A DNA stretch of 32,000 bases. Origin: Bigelowiella natans nucleomorph. Lineage: Eukaryota; Protista; Cercozoa. The first letter of the stretch is position 1. Every line of letters begins with the position of its first letter. The stretch lies in the NCBI GenBank assembly GCA_000002455.1, contig DQ158857.1, positions 90,001 through 122,000 of the forward strand, read 5' to 3'. Positions 3,441 through 31,770 of this stretch are shown in pieces. The notes beneath the pieces are model-generated. The model made no database searches. It had not been told where the DNA came from and was given only the letters and a program-made list of their open reading frames with translations. A program made the position numbers and the translations under genes.

Positions 3441-5897
3441 ATGAAATTATCTGTAAATAACCTATATGAAAAAAACAACGAAAATACTTCTAATAAAGAA
3501 TACCATATTTATACAAACAACTACTCAAAAGAAGAATCAAATGATAACAAAAGGCTAGAAGATTTCTCATTACAATATTTACAAGACTTTTTTAAGGAGA
3601 AAAGTAGAATGGATGATCAAATTGACTTATATCTTAGATCTAAAAACATAATATTAGATCAATCCAGAAAGCCAACTGAAAATATGATTAATAAATTAAC
3701 TAGACGAACTTTTTCATTTTTTCAAAAAAAAAGTCCCTTACATGATCTATCAAATAGTTATTTTTACTGTAATTCTATCAAAATTTTTGGTACAACATCA
3801 AATGATAAAATATTAGATCATGAATCTCTAAAAAACTTTTTATCTCTTCAAACTAAAACCATTTGTAATAAAAAACAACTTTTTAATGATATTAATATGT
3901 TACAACAATTAAAATTGTTCAAATCTGTGAAATTTTTCATTATAAATAAAAACCAAGGATCCTACGATATTATTATTAATCTTCAAAAAGAAAAAATTGG
4001 CAAAATCCAAAAACTATCTTTTGTTAATTGTAATATTTTGCCAAACTCATTAAAAAGTTCTATAATAGAACATTTTATCGGGAAAGATAACGATGTTATC
4101 AATGTCAGCTTAATAAAAAAAATAGTAGATAACTGGTACCATGATTGGGATTATCTAGGTTCCACGGTACATGGAATAGTAGGCATTAAAGACAATAATT
4201 TAAAAATCGTGGTTAGAGAAGCCTACTTGAATTCTTTGAACGTTGGGTTTGTATCAGAATACGATGAAGATGATGAAGAATATGAAAAAAATTTTCAAAT
4301 TAAACGCTTCTATGAAAATTTATTGGATCCTTTCGTCAAAATTTTTCATTCTCTCTTTAATATAAAAATTGGACAGCCTTTTAACAGATCAATCAAATCA
4401 GAGATTCTAAAATATATCAATAATTTAGAAATTATTAACTCTTTCTCTTACTACGAACAGCATATGCCTACTTCTGATGATTATAGATATTTTCCATTTT
4501 TATTTGATAATAATGAAAACATGTTTATCGATGTTTTTTATGAATTAGGCATGTGTACATTATCCTCAATGTTTGTCAGACTAACATTAGGCTTCAGCCG
4601 ATTAAATAACGAAATGAAAGGCATGTCTCCAGAGTATTACTTTGAGAGCGATTGGGAACTAATTTCAATTAAAAAAAAAATTCAAGTATTTAATCTATAC
4701 TACAACAAAAACGCTAGTATTTATAGCGATATGTATGATGAAATCGAAATGCTTTGTGAATTATTTATGCCATACTTCAACTACAGTGACGATATTCACA
4801 ACTTGTTGAATTTCCGTTTAATACTATTTATTGAAGATGGATTATTATCTTTAAGTGACTTACATGACAATCATAGTATTGATAACGATAATGATACAGA
4901 CCTTTTACTAAATTTTTGGGAATTTGAAAAAGATGAAATATTATATTCAAAACAAAAAACTATTAGCCCACTAGCTAAAAATAATTATCATTACGACGAG
5001 ATAGAAAGAAATAAATACACACAAAACTTTGAAGAATTTCAGGTAATGTGTGATGATCAGTCTGACCCTGACGAGGATGATGGTGATGATGATATTTATT
5101 ATGATTACGATGAAGATCCTTTCGAAACCTATAGACTTGGTATTAAAATGATGTTCGAAGAAGAAGTATCTGATACAGCTTTCGTGGCACTGAATTATTT
5201 ATTAAATTATACAATAATAGAAGATGACTATGAAAGTTATCTTGATAATACTGAAAACGTCTATAATAATATCAACACCATAAACGATACCCCACCTTTA
5301 TTATATAATAATCAAAATATTGATCCTAAATTAGCAATGCAGTTTCTTTTTAATTATAATGATTTACAAATAAAATCGTGGAAAATTAGTGGCTTCAAAA
5401 GTTCTTATTTTTTTGAAACCGGCTTATCTCTTAATGGTTTACAACAAAAAATGTTGTTTGAATTAACAAACTACTCAACATTGTATCAGAAGAAAATAGG
5501 AGCACTTAACGGTATTACTTTAATTCTTCATAATAAATTTGGTTATAACATAGGACAGCTGCCATTTTATGAAGCTTTTATATTAGGGGGTTCTAAGTCA
5601 ACCAGAGGATATTCTGATGGAGAAATAGGTATGGCTAAGAATATGTTACAAATGTCCATAGAGATCCGATTATCAATAAATTCTTACGTAGACAAATTAT
5701 TTAATTTTTTTGATTATTCAAGTGATTTGGATTCATCTAAAAATCTAATATACAATCCAGGGGATTACAAACTTTTTAGTGGCCAAGGATCAAGTTTTGG
5801 AATAGGCTTCTTTATTGGTTCAGGTAGAATAGAATACGGAATTAATACTTTGAAGAATACGCCATTTTTAAATCTTGAATATGGTGAGAAATATTAA
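3441..5897 (+). CDS. toc75: Toc75/Omp85-family plastid outer-membrane beta-barrel translocon
   Basis: Uninterrupted 818-aa ORF. POTRA-like [14 protein letters not shown], then C-terminal [33 protein letters not shown] and terminal EYGEKY, as in Toc75/OEP80. Confidence 0.88.
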
Positions 5898-7207: not shown

Positions 7208-8549
7208 TTAGAAGAATGCATTGAATTTTAAAAATTTTTTATTATTGCAATATTTTCTTAAGCAATGAGGAATTTTAACACCTTCTTTAACTTGAAAATT
7301 CTCCACAAGCGCACACATTAACCTTTCAGTAGCGGCAAGTGTACTATTAAAAGTACACATGTCACAATCAAAAGAATTTTGTGTTTTTATCTTGGATTTA
7401 AGACTATTTGACTATTATTTAGCGGATTACTTGCATGTTTAAACAATTTGTACAGGATACTACTTCCCGATAGGTTTTCGATCCTGGAAACCATGCTTCA
7501 ATATCATATTTTATAAAAGAAAAAGAATTCAATTCTGAAGAATTCATCTCAACTATCTGGTAGGGTAGTCTAATTTGTTGATAAAATTTTTCAGATCTTT
7601 CTAGTAAAAGCTGAAATTCTTTATTTTTTAAGAAATATCTGCTATAAGAAATGATGAATTGTTCAATTTTCTCAAATTGATGCACCCTATTTTTGCTTTT
7701 GTAACCTAAAAAGACCTCCAGAATCAATACCATGACTCCCAGCTTCCTTTCTAAAACAAGTCGAATAACAACAAAGTTTGAGCGGAAGATCACTAATTTT
7801 ATAAGTATTATTATACATTTGAGAACAAATCGCTTGCTCTGCTGTTGCAATTAAGTAAAAAGTATTTTTAGCAATTGGTATCTTATATAATTGATTCTTA
7901 AAATCCAGTATTTGTACGCATTTTTTCATTATTTGCTATTATACACAATCCTACTTTTCTAAGGAATAAAGGGGCCCAAAGTTTAACATGTTGTTGCGTT
8001 TCTAAATACTCCAGACCAAACTTAACTAATGCTAAATTTAAATCCAATCCAAAGCCCTTGAGAAAATATCCCCTATTTCCTGCTGCTTTTAAACCGTTAT
8101 TTAAATCTACTATATCTAATTTCCTCATTATTTCTACATGTGAATACCTATAAAAAGGTTGTCTCTTAAATTTCTTTATAATTAGGCTATTTTTCTATTT
8201 TAAATAGCTATACATTATCACATTTGAAAGGCACAAAATAAGATACTCTTTCATATCTTTCCATTTTTACTTCGTTTAAAGTTGACTTTAAATCAAAGCC
8301 AACTGATATGAATTGATACATATTACTTATGGTTTTCCTACCGCTGATTTGAAAAATTTTTTTGCATATATTTCGTTGTACTTTTTGATCTGTTTAACTT
8401 TTTCTTTACAGTATTTGCTTATCAATTTATTTTCTACTGAGTATAAAGCTTTTTCAAATTTAACTGTTTTTATTTTATAAGTTTCAATCAATCGTAAAAT
8501 ATTTACTATTGAAAATAGTCTAACTTTGTGTTTTGAGCAATGTAAACAT
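7208..8549 (-). CDS. Seryl-tRNA synthetase, eukaryotic cytosolic type (start approximate)
   Basis: AGNRGYFLKG, YLIATAEQAI, YSTCFRKEAGSHGIDSGGLFR|VHQFEKIEQF, KYDIEAWFPGSKTYREVVSCTNC and NSTLAATERLMCALVENFQ, spread over exons joined by short introns. Confidence 0.95.
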
Positions 8550-9461: not shown

Positions 9462-10172
9462 ATGTGCTCCATTGTTACTTTGAAAAATGAAGAGTTTAGA
9501 AAAGTACTATCTGTTAAAAAATAACTACTATGAAATGCTTTATCGAAGAGGTTACTATGTTGAAAAAGTATTACAAGTAATTCTAGAAAGTTTTAAATCT
9601 AAATTATTCTCAATTTAAAAAAAAATGTATTGAAAAGAAAAGGTATTTCAAATCATTTAAAATCATAAATCATTTGAATGATACAAATAACAAAGTATAA
9701 AACTATTCACAAGATAATAGGATTTTATAATAATAAAGGTTTGATTGATGTTAACTATCTTGGAGTATTCATATAATTTATTAGTTAAAAATAGAAAAAG
9801 CAAAAACAAATAATTCAAACAGCATAATTTTTATTACTAAACGATACTTAAGCAAACAAACCAATATCGCACTAAGTCATTTTAGGAGAAATTTCAACAT
9901 AGAAATTTTTTTCGAGTATGAAATTTTAATTAACCCTATTAAACATTTCCTAGTCCCCAAACATGTCTTATTAGCGCCAGATATTAAAAGAAAAATTTTA
10001 AAAAGTTATAACGTAAAAGATTCACAGTTACCTAAAATTAAGGTATTAATTTATGATATAGTTATCAGATCCAATCTCCAAATATTATGGAGCTAAAAAA
10101 GGGAATATGTTTAAAATTATTAGATTTTCAGAAAATATAGGAGTATATTTGAGCTATAGAATAATAAACTGA
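9462..10172 (+). CDS. rpb5: RNA polymerase I/II/III common subunit RPB5
   Basis: EMLYRRGYYV near the N-terminus and C-terminal EILINPIKHFLVPKHVLL...QLPKIK|LSDPISKYYGAKKGNMFKIIRFSE..LSYRII. 19-nt introns at 9474-9492 and 10043-10061, plus others. Confidence 0.93.
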
Positions 10173-10173
10173 A

Positions 10174-10252
10174 TCCGTCGAGCTGGATTCGAACCAACAA
10201 CCAAAAGATTTTTCAATTACAGTCTTACGCTCTACCATTGAGCTATCGACGG
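10174..10252 (-). tRNA. trnY-GUA: tRNA-Tyr(GUA) with a 7-nt intron at 37/38
   Basis: CCGUCGA UA GCUCAAUGGUAGAGC G UAAGA CU GUA A [UUGAAAA] A UCUUU UGGUU GUUGG UUCGAAU CCAGC UCGACGG A. Intron at 10210-10216. Confidence 0.93.
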
Positions 10253-10256
10253 GCAA

Positions 10257-10342
10257 TTCTAATCAGTCCCCTTAACCACTCAGGCATGGTCGCCATTTCG
10301 CGACCAACAGGATTCGAACCTATGCGAGTAAACTCAACTGAT
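10257..10342 (-). tRNA. trnS-AGA: Circularly permuted tRNA-Ser(AGA): 3' half (10342-10299), then a 5-nt spacer, then the 5' half (10293-10257)
   Basis: 3' half: A UCAGU UGAGUUUACUCGC AUAGG UUCGAAU CCUGU UGGUCGC G. Spacer: AAAUG. 5' half: GCGACCA UG CCUGAGUGGUUAAGG GG ACUGA UU AGA A. Perfect acceptor (GCGACCA/UGGUCGC) and anticodon (ACUGA/UCAGU) stems, long variable arm, G73. Confidence 0.93.
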
Positions 10343-10401
10343 AATTAATATTTAATAATTTTCTGCATGCAAATTATTTTAATCATTAATAGTATAATTA
10401 T

Positions 10402-13023
10402 ATGATAAAGAGTTTTACTCAAACTAAGATCCATTTATTCAATATAAAAAAGGATTTTACAAATTTAAGACTAGATCTTAAAAGCTATGCAAAAAAAACA
10501 AATAAAAATAATAAATACGTATTAAAGAAAAAATCTTACAGGAAAAATTTTGATTTTGATTTTTATAACGATTCATTAGGACTTTTAAAAAAGAACAATT
10601 ACAAACATCAAAAAGACAGATATGTAGATTTTTTTAAATCTATTCTCTTCTCAGAAGATTATTTTAAGTTAGAAGAAAAAAAGCTATTACTGACTATTTT
10701 ATTAAACTTTTCCGATTTTTCAAATAGCAATAAGAAATTTATTCTATCTTTAAAACTAGATAAAACATCAAAAGAATTAGGATCCCTTAACCTTAAAGAT
10801 TATTTTCTTAAATCACTACGATACGACAAAATTTTTGATACTCTATTACAAGAAAATTACTCAATAAGTAAGAAATCCAATCATGATCCTGAATTTTCTA
10901 ATAGAAATTATAAAACTAAATCTGATTCTTTTTATCAAGGAATACTTGTCATTGTAAACGCTTATTCAAATTTTTACAATTTTTATTCAAAAGATGACTT
11001 AGAATACTTTTCATACTATCTATTGAAAGAATTTTTATCATATTTAGACTTTAATAAAAAATATGATACAACTAACTGGGATCCTAAAAATGAAAATTTG
11101 GATCTTAAAAACTTACTAGCTTTCGTTGAGTTCTTTTTATATATAAAATTCAAATACATGGATAACAACTCAATAAAAGTTAATCCAGAACCCTCACCTA
11201 TCACTATACACATCTTTAAACCTTTACTAACACAATATTTGGTTAATTCTTTTAAAAAATGGTATTTCAACTATCAATACTTTCATTATTTAATGGCTTT
11301 TAGTCAAGTATTTGTGAAACTGGAATATAATCATTTTAAGAATGAATTTGAAAAAGATCTTCAATTAAATGAAAATAACTTATCTATGAGAGGCAATTTT
11401 GACTCATATCTAGAATTAGATTCAATTACAAAATCTCGAATGAAGAACTATTTTTTTGACAAAGAATTTAACAATTTACACGATCTAAATTTACCTTATG
11501 CTAAACAATTTTTATACAATATGTACATACAAGAAAATTCATCACATGCTTTGAATTATTATTCATATATTTCTACAATTTCAAAGTTTAAATTTAATAG
11601 ATCCTTAACTAAAGATAACATTTCTCTAAACTTAATTAGAAAATTATATAGAAAAATGGTATTTCTGAAAATGAAAAATAATATTGAACGAATAAAATAT
11701 GTATATAAACTAGCCTTCCTACTGAATTTATATAGTATAAAAAACTGTAACATTTCAAATCTTTGCGAATTCTATACAAACTTTTTGGATTTTACTGATA
11801 GATATAATTATTCTTTAAACCATAACTTGTTGGAAAAACAGTTTTCTCAGTTTTTCAACTCTTTTGAAAAAATATTTCATATTTTCTTCAGTATAAAATC
11901 TACATTTTCAAAACAAAGACTAAACTCTTTTTATACCTCTACTGGTAATATACTAGTAAAAAAAAATTCATGTCTTAAAAATAAAAGGAAATATAATTTT
12001 CATACATTTAATAGCAATAAAATCAACCACCTCAGGGTAAGCTTACCAAGAAAGACATTCAAGAAAAATGTTATTAATGAAAGTGATCGCTTTTTCGATA
12101 TTCACTCCAAAAAATCTAAAGAAAATATAGAATTCGTGAGGGATACTTATTTAAAAAAATACCCTAAACACCTAAACTCTAAATGTATATTACAAGCTCT
12201 TACTGTCTTAGGTAATTACGATACTTTATTCATACCAGAAAACAATACTGATAACAAAACTAAGCTAAATAAAAATATCCTAAGAATAAATAGAACCTTT
12301 ATGGCTGGAACCTACGGAATTTTTAAGAACATCCATAAGAGAAGTATGTATGATAATTATAATTTTGTTAAAACTAACTATTTCCATCTTGTATTAGATT
12401 ATCAGAACTTATTAAGAAATAAAACTTTGGAAAAAAGATTATACCTTGACTATAATGTTTCATATAATTATTTTTTTCTCAACTATTTTAAGATTTTAGT
12501 CAAAAGTTCTAATTCGACTTCCAGCTTATATTCACTAGCTCTTATCACTTTCGTATTGTTTAAAAAATACAAAATTTTATGGCATTTGCCATTAAAAAAT
12601 TATTTGTTTTTTCGAATGAAATATTTAGAATACAGTGGTTTCGAACTAGACGAAATTTCAAATCCTGATTATTACTGTTTTGACAAGTTTATTAGGAATA
12701 GTATTAACGCAAGGGATAAGTCTATCGTAAATTATTATTTATCAAAAGAAACTATCACCATAATTTTAAAAATAAGTTTGGTTCTTTTCTATGTCAGTAA
12801 AAGAAAAAATAGATCTTTAAGATATCTTTTAGCATTTATTAATATTAGTAGCAATTCGAATGTAAAACTAAGTAATATAACGAATAGTCGAAAAAAATTA
12901 TTATATCTCCTAAATGTGTATTTTAGAAAAATAAATAAAAAAAATATCAATAGAATAAAATCTATCATAAAAGTATTAAATCTCAGCAAAGAAGAAACTA
13001 AGTATATTTTAAGTAATAAATAA
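10402..13023 (+). CDS. Large intronless hypothetical protein (873 aa, K/N/F/Y/L-rich), possibly plastid-targeted
   Basis: 2.6-kb uninterrupted ORF in DNA where stops are frequent. Basic, hydroxylated N-terminus. No motif recognised. Confidence 0.75.
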   Translation: MIKSFTQTKIHLFNIKKDFTNLRLDLKSYAKKTNKNNKYVLKKKSYRKNFDFDFYNDSLGLLKKNNYKHQKDRYVDFFKSILFSEDYFKLEEKKLLLTILLNFSDFSNSNKKFILSLKLDKTSKELGSLNLKDYFLKSLRYDKIFDTLLQENYSISKKSNHDPEFSNRNYKTKSDSFYQGILVIVNAYSNFYNFYSKDDLEYFSYYLLKEFLSYLDFNKKYDTTNWDPKNENLDLKNLLAFVEFFLYIKFKYMDNNSIKVNPEPSPITIHIFKPLLTQYLVNSFKKWYFNYQYFHYLMAFSQVFVKLEYNHFKNEFEKDLQLNENNLSMRGNFDSYLELDSITKSRMKNYFFDKEFNNLHDLNLPYAKQFLYNMYIQENSSHALNYYSYISTISKFKFNRSLTKDNISLNLIRKLYRKMVFLKMKNNIERIKYVYKLAFLLNLYSIKNCNISNLCEFYTNFLDFTDRYNYSLNHNLLEKQFSQFFNSFEKIFHIFFSIKSTFSKQRLNSFYTSTGNILVKKNSCLKNKRKYNFHTFNSNKINHLRVSLPRKTFKKNVINESDRFFDIHSKKSKENIEFVRDTYLKKYPKHLNSKCILQALTVLGNYDTLFIPENNTDNKTKLNKNILRINRTFMAGTYGIFKNIHKRSMYDNYNFVKTNYFHLVLDYQNLLRNKTLEKRLYLDYNVSYNYFFLNYFKILVKSSNSTSSLYSLALITFVLFKKYKILWHLPLKNYLFFRMKYLEYSGFELDEISNPDYYCFDKFIRNSINARDKSIVNYYLSKETITIILKISLVLFYVSKRKNRSLRYLLAFINISSNSNVKLSNITNSRKKLLYLLNVYFRKINKKNINRIKSIIKVLNLSKEETKYILSNK

Positions 13024-13206: not shown

Positions 13207-15906
13207 ATGATAATGAAAATAAAAAGTGTTTCAAAGCTAAATCTTCATGGAACAATAAATGAAAGATATATAAGAGCAAAAAATAAAAATATTCAGAAGA
13301 ATATTAAATATAATCTAAAAAAAAATCATATTTCAATGCTTTGGAATAAAAACTATTCTATCGTAAATGACAGAAGTACCATATGCCATGTAACAATAGA
13401 TCCTAGTAAATTCAGCGAAGATTTAACAAATATTTTAGCACTAGCACAAATGGAAGCTGCTGCTAGAAGTACTTTCAAAATCACAGGACCTTTTATACTA
13501 CTTGGCATTTTAATGGCTCGTGGTAGCACAACAGGTTATGCTATGCTCAAAACTTGGAAAGTAAATTACTTGAAGGCAAGAATAGAAGCCGATAAGATAA
13601 GATCAGATTTGACCAATCTATTTGGAGAGTTACCCGAAACATATAGTTTTGATGATGAGGCTCATCGTATTCTGGATTATGCAGAAAGATACGCAAACTT
13701 TTTCGGATTGGTACAAATTGAAACTATACATGTTGTCATGGCAATGTTTAGATATAAAAGAAGTAACGCATATAGAATTATTGAAACAATAACACCAAAT
13801 TTTGAATCATTGGAAGAAATAGTAGATAATATAAGGCCTAACATCTCTTTAAAAAGAGACAGTAAAGGATTTATTTATCAAGCACAAAAATCAGAACTAC
13901 CTGAATTAGACCCTGAATCTGAAGATATTATTGATACATTTGGAGTAGATTTAACCGAGAAAGCCGAATTCGGCGAAGGAGATCCAGTTATAGGAAGAAA
14001 AAAAGAAATTGATAGATTGATCAGAGTCCTTGCAAGAAAGTCTAAAAATAATCCTTGCTTAGTTGGTGACCCAGGAGTAGGTAAAACAGCCATTGCCGAA
14101 GGTCTTGCTTATAGAATATGGAATGACGAAGTTCCAGAATTTTTAAAAAATAAAAGGATCATCAATTTGGAGCTAACTAAAATTGTTGCTGGATCCAAAT
14201 ATCGAGGTGATTTCGAGTCCAGAATTTTATCAATAATAGAAATGGCTAGATTCGAAGATAGTGTTATTTTATTTATTGACGAAATCCATACAATAATGGG
14301 GGCCGGATCCAGTGAAGGTACATTAGATGCAGCTAATATGCTCAAACCTCCTCTTTCTAGAGGTGAAATATCATTGATCGGTGCAACTACTGAAGAGGAA
14401 TTTAGAAAATATATAAAAGCTGATGGAGCGCTAGAAAGAAGATTCCAAGCTGTTAAAGTACCAGAACCTACAATATCAGAAGCCATTCAAATACTACACG
14501 GAATTAAAAAAAATTTCGGAAATTATCATGGAGTAGTTTATAGTGATGAAGCAATAGAAGCTTGTGTAAAATTTTCTAAACAATACATCTCCGATAAATT
14601 TTTACCTGATAAAGCCATTGATTTATTGGATGAATCAGGAGCATTCGTAAAAATGAAAGAAGGATATGCAATAAAAAATATAGAAGATTATACATTCTTA
14701 ATAAAATCATACAGGGAAACTAAGAAAGCTGTGGTTGAAAAAGATATTCAAAAGTTAAAAGCAACACTCATTACAGAGATCAAAGCACTAAAAAAAGTCG
14801 AACAGGTACTACAAAAAATAAAACTTAGCCAAGAAGCAATAAAAAGAGATATAAACAATATCAGAGTAGTAAAAGTTCCTGACGTAGAGACTGTGATCGA
14901 AGAAATGACCGGAGTTAAAATAAAAGAAGTATCCAAATCAGAATCTGAAAATCTATTAAACCTTGAGTCAATCTTACATAAAAGCGTAATTGGACAAGAG
15001 GAGGCTGTTACAGCTGTATCCAAAGCAATGAGAAAATCAAGAGTTGGATTAAGAGATCCTAAAAGACCTATTGCTTCTTTCATTTTTGCTGGCCCTACTG
15101 GGGTAGGAAAAACAGAACTTGCCAAAACTCTATCTAGAGTTTACTTTGATTCTGAAGATGCAATGATTCGATTTGATATGAGTGATTTTGCTGAAAAGCA
15201 TAATGTATCTAAATTAATAGGATCACCTCCGGGCTATATAGGGTATTCAGACGGCGGCCAATTGACAGAAGCTGTTAGAAAAACTCCTCACTCATTGGTA
15301 CTTTTCGATGAACTAGAAAAGGCTCATCCAGATGTTTATCTACCTTTATTACAAGTTCTTGATGATGGTAGGTTAGCAGATTCTAAAGGAAAAATAGTAG
15401 ATTTTAAAAATACAATAATTATACTAACATCAAATTTAGGTGCTAAAGAAGTAGAAGCTCGAAGAAAAGCGATCAAACAGTCATCTGAAACTGAGGATAT
15501 ATCAGAAAAAGAATCTTTTTCAATTTACAATGCCGCTATAGCAGAGTACTTTAGGCCAGAATTTCTAAACAGAATCGACGAAATTATTATATTTAAACGT
15601 TTAACTCAATCACAAGTCTATGAAATTTTTGCTATATTCATGAACTCTGTAAAACATCGAGCAGCAAAGCTCGGTATTACAATCCAAGAAACAGAAAGAT
15701 TGAGACAACTAGTTACAGAAGCAGGATATACGCCAGCTTTTGGTGCTAGACCTCTAAAAAGAACTATATCAAGATTGATAGAAAGTCCATTATCAGAAAT
15801 GATTTTATCAAATGAAGTTGTTTCAGGAGATACTGTTTTATTAGATTACTACAATAAGAAAGTAACTTTCATAAAAGTCGATAAGAGCATTCTTAAATTT
15901 GATTAA
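13207..15906 (+). CDS. clpC: ClpC/Hsp100 AAA+ chaperone with an N-terminal transit-peptide-like extension
   Basis: Clp N-domain, NBD1 (GDPGVGKT, LFIDEIH, GSKYRGDFE), short middle domain, NBD2 (GPTGVGKT, GSPPGYIGY, LFDELEKAH, FRPEFLNRIDE, FGARPLKR). Confidence 0.95.
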   Translation: MIMKIKSVSKLNLHGTINERYIRAKNKNIQKNIKYNLKKNHISMLWNKNYSIVNDRSTICHVTIDPSKFSEDLTNILALAQMEAAARSTFKITGPFILLGILMARGSTTGYAMLKTWKVNYLKARIEADKIRSDLTNLFGELPETYSFDDEAHRILDYAERYANFFGLVQIETIHVVMAMFRYKRSNAYRIIETITPNFESLEEIVDNIRPNISLKRDSKGFIYQAQKSELPELDPESEDIIDTFGVDLTEKAEFGEGDPVIGRKKEIDRLIRVLARKSKNNPCLVGDPGVGKTAIAEGLAYRIWNDEVPEFLKNKRIINLELTKIVAGSKYRGDFESRILSIIEMARFEDSVILFIDEIHTIMGAGSSEGTLDAANMLKPPLSRGEISLIGATTEEEFRKYIKADGALERRFQAVKVPEPTISEAIQILHGIKKNFGNYHGVVYSDEAIEACVKFSKQYISDKFLPDKAIDLLDESGAFVKMKEGYAIKNIEDYTFLIKSYRETKKAVVEKDIQKLKATLITEIKALKKVEQVLQKIKLSQEAIKRDINNIRVVKVPDVETVIEEMTGVKIKEVSKSESENLLNLESILHKSVIGQEEAVTAVSKAMRKSRVGLRDPKRPIASFIFAGPTGVGKTELAKTLSRVYFDSEDAMIRFDMSDFAEKHNVSKLIGSPPGYIGYSDGGQLTEAVRKTPHSLVLFDELEKAHPDVYLPLLQVLDDGRLADSKGKIVDFKNTIIILTSNLGAKEVEARRKAIKQSSETEDISEKESFSIYNAAIAEYFRPEFLNRIDEIIIFKRLTQSQVYEIFAIFMNSVKHRAAKLGITIQETERLRQLVTEAGYTPAFGARPLKRTISRLIESPLSEMILSNEVVSGDTVLLDYYNKKVTFIKVDKSILKFD

Positions 15907-30999: not shown

Positions 31000-31628
31000 A
31001 TGGAAGAAACCATCAACTTAATCAAAACAAATACTAAAACCATGAAAGGCGGAGCCTTCCCAGAATGCCACTTAATTCAAAACTTATTTATCAAATTCTT
31101 TGTGTTAAATAATAGAACTCATTCCCACATAGTATCTCGAAGTTTTAACTTAAAAAATAGATAAAAGTATCGAGTATAAAATAAAACAGTTATACAATAA
31201 TAGACTTTTACTAAAGGAAACCAAAATTATGATTAATAAAAATTTAGCAAATAATTTTGGTAATCTTCACATGGATAAAAAATTCCAAAAGTATATAAAA
31301 TTTACTCATTGTGTATAAAAATTATTAACAGGGATCTACTCGCATCATCAAGTTAATCTCAAAGCAAAAAGATGTTTTACATTATTTTCAAAAAGATAAA
31401 ATAAAAAAACACTTATTGTATTCAATGTCACAACAAACCAACCAGAAGAATAAAGTAGAGAATAAAAAAAAATCATTGGCTATTCCCAAGGCCATATCAA
31501 ATTGGAAAAACCCAAGAGGTTTTAGTATTCCATTACATCATCGAAACAATGCATTGAACGAAGTAAAAATAAATTTAAACCAAAAATTCATATATCTTTC
31601 CAACGTTATTGATTTATTAGATAAATAA
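31000..31628 (+). CDS. prp45: SKIP/SNW1/Prp45 splicing factor, C-terminally truncated
   Basis: GGAFPECH (SKIP GGAFPEIH), YIKFT..RIIKLISKQKD and IPKAISNWKNPRGFSIPL. Two 19-nt introns, about 197 aa. Confidence 0.88.
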
Positions 31629-31637
31629 TAAATGATT

Positions 31638-31770
31638 AGCAAGGCCGAATTCCTTAATTGGTAAAGCCTTAGTAAAAATTGAGACGAGATTCTTTGAATC
31701 TCATAGCAACGGTTAAGTTGCTAAGAACAGATACTACACTTGATCTTAGCCAAAAGGCCGAGATAGGTAG
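31638..31770 (-). ncRNA. U2: U2 spliceosomal snRNA (short form; ends approximate)
   Basis: Reverse strand reads UACCUAUCUCGGCCUUUUGGCUAAGAUCAAGUGUAGUAUCUGUUCUU, then stem IIa UAGCAAC/GUUGCUA, stem IIb GAGAUUC/GAAUCUC, Sm site AAUUUUUA and one 3' stem AAGGC/GCCUU. Confidence 0.95.

Follow-up and report, generated by a model that had tools for sequence, protein, structure and literature searches.

Can a serine tRNA gene whose two halves lie in inverted order be a working gene and, if so, how would its transcript be cut, closed and freed from the tRNA that follows it? The question is raised by a locus in the nucleomorph genome of Bigelowiella natans (372,870 bases; three contigs of 140,590, 134,144 and 98,136), situated in the 32,000-nt stretch of DNA analyzed here (the window, whose numbering is used below). 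An earlier sequence-only reading had placed tRNA positions 38-73 ahead of positions 1-37 on the minus strand, with AAAUG in between, and every element was found where it had been described. The features of the locus, in the order of transcription, are as follows.

10343..10350, minus strand: 5′ leader, in which -3 to -6 are able to pair with U32-G35, and -7/-8 with trailer positions +2/+3
10299..10342, minus strand: 3′ half of tRNA-Ser(AGA), positions 38-73, with A38 at 10342 and G73 at 10299
10294..10298, minus strand: intervening sequence AAAUG (5 nt), the hairpin loop closing the acceptor stem
10257..10293, minus strand: 5′ half of tRNA-Ser(AGA), positions 1-37, with G1 at 10293 and A37 at 10257
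10253..10256, minus strand: 4-nt linker without a T-run terminator, serving as trailer of the Ser precursor and possibly as 5′ leader of tRNA-Tyr
10174..10252, minus strand: tRNA-Tyr(GTA) in normal order, with a 7-nt intron (10216-10210), assigned by Rfam and manual numbering

The 3′ half (10342-10299) comprises the anticodon 3′ strand, the variable arm, the T arm with the B box, the acceptor 3′ strand and G73, while the 5′ half (10293-10257) comprises the acceptor 5′ strand, the D arm with the A box, the anticodon AGA (10260-10258) and A37. Re-ordered, they give an 81-nt tRNA-Ser(AGA) with G73 and a long variable arm, which ARAGORN calls tRNA-Ser(aga), the outcome that had been expected of the re-ordered sequence. 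The stems joining the halves are complete (acceptor 7/7, anticodon 5/5 and T 5/5 pairs); the D stem has 3 pairs plus G13.A22, and the variable arm 4 bp. [quoted passage not shown] It is single-copy: neither half is part of an intact tRNA, and the genome holds no intact copy elsewhere.

The claim that standard tRNA finders miss this gene was borne out, since in native order ARAGORN calls no tRNA and Rfam recovers only a T-arm fragment (11 bits). None of 100 shuffled versions of the window contained the permuted pattern. When 232 kb (parts of chromosomes 1 and 2) were scanned for permutations, 475 constructs passed at the AGA locus and 340 at a second permuted Ser locus, compared to a background of at most 9 in 20 simulated sets; additional hits were either intact tRNAs or no higher than background. 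No further permuted tRNAs were found in these 232 kb (type I/II junctions, overlaps included) or by a genome-wide Rfam scan; the pattern scans were run on native gene order. Since many junctions pass ARAGORN, the anticodon is not fixed by its call alone: junction 37/38 ties with 38/39 and 39/40 for the top threshold, and no other option combines U33, a purine at 37 and A38. Other junctions, giving Ile, Thr or Asp anticodons, scored lower and lacked either purine 37 or an intact stem. The proposed identity and junction are thus upheld by the cloverleaf and by the match to a published table.

As cited through PMC3978253 and PMC4494063, Maruyama et al. 2010 (doi 10.1093/molbev/msp313) give a type II permuted trnS(AGA) for the B. 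natans nucleomorph, and Table 1 of PMC3978253 has entries for Ser(AGA) and Ser(CGA), each of type II (37/38) with a 5-bp spacer and no intron. Because anticodon, junction, spacer and companion CGA gene agree with the published tables, the locus is the published gene, known in print since 2010; the sequence-only reading, which had cited a chlorarachniophyte nucleomorph example of a class that is not new, had this very gene before it. As a finding it adds nothing new, and a 2014 review tabulates it; being overlooked by ordinary tRNA finders, it serves well as a positive control. The companion, tRNA-Ser(CGA), lies at locus L006 (G000:C2:39672-39587, minus strand), has a 5-nt spacer and adjoins tRNA-Ile(UAU), with 6 nt from A37 to the start of tRNA-Ile. 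A T5 run is present inside its variable region. We count 20 intact tRNAs plus the two permuted Ser genes; 22 tRNAs are listed in PMC4494063. One of the intact genes, tRNA-Leu(UAG) (L012), is 74 nt long and has no long variable arm. Other contents of the window are ordinary nucleomorph content:

3441-5897, plus strand: Omp85/Toc75-type gene
7419-7850, minus strand: exon of a class II aminoacyl-tRNA synthetase
13207-15906, plus strand: Clp-type AAA chaperone
31585-31770, minus strand: U2 snRNA

To judge whether the gene works, it was compared with homologues. A metagenome pattern scan gave 66 loci, four of which, three of them distinct, proved to be genuine permuted genes for tRNA-Ser(AGA):

L057, 1747-1844: permuted homologue, spacer 17 nt
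L070, 2243-2330: permuted homologue, spacer 7 nt
L073, 1193-1280: permuted homologue, spacer 7 nt
L099, 1703-1790: permuted homologue, spacer 7 nt

The remaining 62 of the 66 read as ordinary-order tRNA-Ser genes within tRNA arrays and were set aside. In most of these (in the series L036-L101) the tRNA genes are densely packed and include an intact tRNA-Ser(AGA) of eukaryote type, frequently arranged as Phe-Arg-Ser-Gly-Leu; these arrays are possibly giant-virus tRNA clusters. The four permuted genes lie on contigs of 60-63% GC on which Pfam named nothing; they are from high-GC eukaryotes, and their spacers are unlike those of the published table. They share with B. natans the 81-nt mature length, G73, A38 and a 32:-3 pair, and are identical to its trnS(AGA) at 59-66 of the 81 positions. 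They differ from it in their spacers (7-17 nt), in standing free and in a T-run 4-10 nt after A37. When pairs were counted by position (not from the MAFFT alignment, which misplaced the spacer), the homologues and the CGA paralogue showed both-sided changes at 5 of the 7 acceptor and 3 of the 5 anticodon-stem pairs, with none broken.

Codon usage points the same way. An AGA anticodon with inosine at position 34 reads UCU, UCC and UCA, and in 15 long ORFs TCT, TCC and TCA together account for 658 of the 985 Ser codons. Of the 20 intact tRNAs a single one is a tRNA-Ser; its anticodon is GCT and it reads AGY. If the gene works, it would in all likelihood supply the tRNA for UCU/UCC/UCA codons. 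The argument is weakened by the lack of tRNA genes for Ala, Arg, Gly and Pro in the nucleomorph genome, which makes import necessary (the nucleomorph must import some tRNAs; PMC6461891), and import could cover Ser too. The comparative support from homologues and compensatory changes therefore appears stronger than the codon need.

The same requirement for import would accommodate a silent remnant, left by tandem duplication of an intron-containing tRNA-Ser and replaced by imported serine tRNA. The contigs searched here (see below) provide no RNA evidence against it, and permuted Ser genes are undetected in two Lotharella species (PMC4494063). A remnant is nevertheless highly improbable in view of the intact stems with their compensatory changes, the retention of both permuted Ser genes in A. 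amoebiformis (PMC4494063) and of the gene in distant homologues, and the expression reported for "some" nucleomorph and green-algal permuted tRNAs (PMC3978253). We consider it very probable that the locus is a functional, single-copy, circularly permuted trnS(AGA), matured by the published pathway.

The steps foreseen by the sequence-only reading (endonuclease, ligase, circle, then RNase P and tRNase Z) agree with the published model. It had also noted, correctly, that the B box lies upstream of the A box, a feature treated in PMC3978253. Because of this order an upstream start is needed, and transcription would begin in the AT-rich stretch upstream of 10350:

10343..10401, strand not assigned: AT-rich intergenic stretch of 59 nt, head-to-head with an 873-codon ORF starting at 10402

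An upstream promoter would have no intergenic room other than this stretch, and TATA-like words within it have no weight at such AT content. Pfam gave no match for the 873-codon ORF itself (10402-13023, plus strand). A hint of a transcript antisense to the ORF comes from one RNA contig, from which 18 nt of it (11204-11221), bounded by GT-AG on the minus strand, have been removed. The transcript of the permuted gene would fold into a cloverleaf with its ends located at the anticodon loop, where a splicing endonuclease of eukaryote type, probably encoded by the host and imported, would cleave on the 5′ side of A38 and on the 3′ side of A37, relying chiefly on the tRNA body, with help from the U32:A(-3) pair. 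Ligation would give a circle, from which RNase P and tRNase Z would excise the 5-nt loop, and CCA would be added. Circular intermediates have been reported for red and green algae (PMC3978253).

What the endonuclease recognizes at 37/38 is a separate matter, since a full bulge-helix-bulge (BHB) had been proposed there. At the register described, U32-G35 can form 4/4 pairs (one G-U) with leader positions -3 to -6, flanked by two 3-nt bulges, so that a relaxed BHB (hBH) formed by the termini is possible; it is statistically weak on its own, as such pairing has a probability of ~0.05 by chance at this register in such AT-rich DNA. The emphasis on a full BHB was overstated. The structure falls short of a strict hBHBh′: the outer helix h′ has 2 bp, and the modelled energy worsens on adding the helix, from -23.6 to -21.9 (-19.0 with h′). 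Nor is the helix conserved beyond 32:-3. All four homologues have a covarying Watson-Crick pair at 32:-3 (U-A; C-G in L057) and a pair at 35:-6, but the middle pairs 33:-4 and 34:-5 are broken; the CGA paralogue retains 2 of the 4 central pairs and has C.U at 32:-3.

The ordinary tRNA introns of the genome are 7 nt (Tyr), 5 nt (Lys) and 8 nt (Met, boundary set by hand) in length, and have C.A, C.C and C.A, respectively, at 32:-3. They are located at 10216-10210 of the window (Tyr) and at L008 and L013 (Lys-CUU; elongator Met), and none has a Watson-Crick pair at this position. The tRNA body is the reference from which eukaryotic endonucleases measure. Since 32:-3 is unpaired in the other four splicing substrates of the genome, recognition here is probably also by the tRNA body, as judged from the sequences, rather than by a strict BHB. 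Recognition of a strict archaeal-type BHB formed by the termini, to which the complete pairing and two 3-nt bulges at exactly the canonical register would be suited, is unlikely in the light of the chance level and the missing energy gain, the broken pairs in the homologues and the CGA paralogue, and the unpaired 32:-3 of the Tyr, Lys and Met introns. PMC3978253 likewise places permuted junctions in the relaxed hBH class, suited to the eukaryal enzyme.

Searches of the nucleomorph found no endonuclease or TFIIIC B-block domains, and those for BRF1 and PRORP, which had no working control, were also blank (profiles PF01974, PF07741, PF04182 and PF16953). Neighboring spliced genes, whose spliceosomal introns are 18-20 nt long, were searched exon by exon. 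With genes interrupted by tiny introns, and no working control for two of the searches, these blanks do not show absence; they are compatible with host-encoded enzymes.

Both permuted tRNA-Ser genes directly precede an intact tRNA, by 4 nt (Tyr) and 6 nt (Ile). The downstream partner of trnS(AGA) was called Phe by ARAGORN with introns allowed; this was rejected in favor of Tyr(GTA), with its 7-nt intron, on the basis of Rfam and manual numbering. Among the intact tRNAs, 2-3 of 20 have a tRNA this close downstream (post hoc Fisher test on two cases, p 0.03-0.04). All three tRNA-Ser genes (L003, L006 and window 10174-10342) are the upstream member of a tandem, with Cys, Ile and Tyr. The layout makes it plausible that a two-tRNA precursor is made and divided where the endonuclease cuts after A37, and we lean modestly towards a transcript that continues through tRNA-Tyr, in which this cut would also free a pre-tRNA-Tyr with a 4-nt leader. 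Promoter donation, by the Tyr boxes or by the Ser A box with the Tyr B box, is unlikely given known Pol III geometry, since a start set in either way would be too far downstream for the Ser 3′ half.

The same tRNA-Ser may instead be transcribed alone and tRNA-Tyr from its own A and B boxes, which are complete, the 4-nt spacing reflecting compaction. Tight tandems also occur among intact tRNAs (Ser-GCT/Cys, Trp/Ile/Gln), in about half of the tRNA genes the 70 nt downstream contain no run of T≥4, and T4-T5 runs are found within several tRNA bodies; T-runs being irregular as terminators in the nucleomorph, where Pol III termination may be atypical, little can be read into the lack of one. Such separate transcription has to contend with a 4-nt gap that leaves no room for a terminator, with a layout present in both permuted genes vs 2-3 of the 20 intact tRNAs, and with the T-run that follows A37 in 4/4 homologues. 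It is a real possibility, to which we give somewhat less credence than to the shared transcript. The shared transcript can be extended to both loci, and this we offer only tentatively: in both permuted Ser genes an intact tRNA downstream may have taken the place of the terminator, and both may be made as two-tRNA precursors, in which the cut at A37 would both start circularization and separate the tRNAs, by an endonuclease that would work without the anticodon-intron pair and also handle 5-8-nt introns.

RNA contigs from public runs were inspected for products of this pathway. Neither a ligated 37/38 junction nor a circular back-joint was found in the contigs of four public runs, which carry plus-strand mRNA introns and from which small RNAs would be lost. 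Contigs of three probable RNA runs, which are strandless, span both tRNAs (Ser and Tyr) unspliced, and the introns removed in them are plus-strand introns of the neighbor on the opposite strand:

9788..10172, plus strand: last two exons of rpb5

The rpb5 stop codon is 1 nt from the tRNA-Tyr 3′ end (10170-10174), which necessarily places the rpb5 3′ UTR antisense to this tRNA. Since plus-strand rpb5 introns are removed and the stop adjoins tRNA-Tyr, the spanning contigs are probably antisense read-through of rpb5 mRNA, and argue neither for nor against tRNA processing. At 10217 all four runs, including an unspliced, DNA-like one, have C, giving tRNA-Tyr G37, whereas the assembly gives A37; the assembly base is an error or a strain difference, not editing.

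Possibly unreported is the position of trnS(AGA) 4 bases ahead of a normal tRNA, perhaps on the same transcript. The tandem position before tRNA-Tyr or tRNA-Ile is unmentioned in PMC3978253 and PMC4494063, the two papers compared, and PMC3978253 mentions no dicistronic, polycistronic or clustered arrangement. If confirmed, an endonuclease cut acting as separator of a two-tRNA transcript would be of interest to tRNA-processing specialists, as would a nucleomorph endonuclease that tolerates introns of 5-8 nt and does without a 32:-3 pair.

Compared with known systems, the gene itself differs in nothing from the published B. natans trnS(AGA): organism, anticodon, junction 37/38, 5-bp spacer, absence of an intron and companion trnS(CGA) are the same. 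The nuclear permuted tRNA-Ser genes of prasinophytes (Ostreococcus, Micromonas) share the type II junction but have longer spacers (12-64 nt published for Ser, vs 5 nt in B. natans). The permuted tRNAs of Cyanidioschyzon merolae (Soma et al. 2007) have the circular intermediate and the inverted A and B boxes in common with it; they differ in having junctions at four positions, introns in some permuted genes, and a regular upstream TATA and downstream T-stretch. Those of Thermofilum pendens (Chan et al. 2011) also have inverted halves and a short spacer, but their junction is at 59/60, CCA is encoded and the endonuclease is archaeal.
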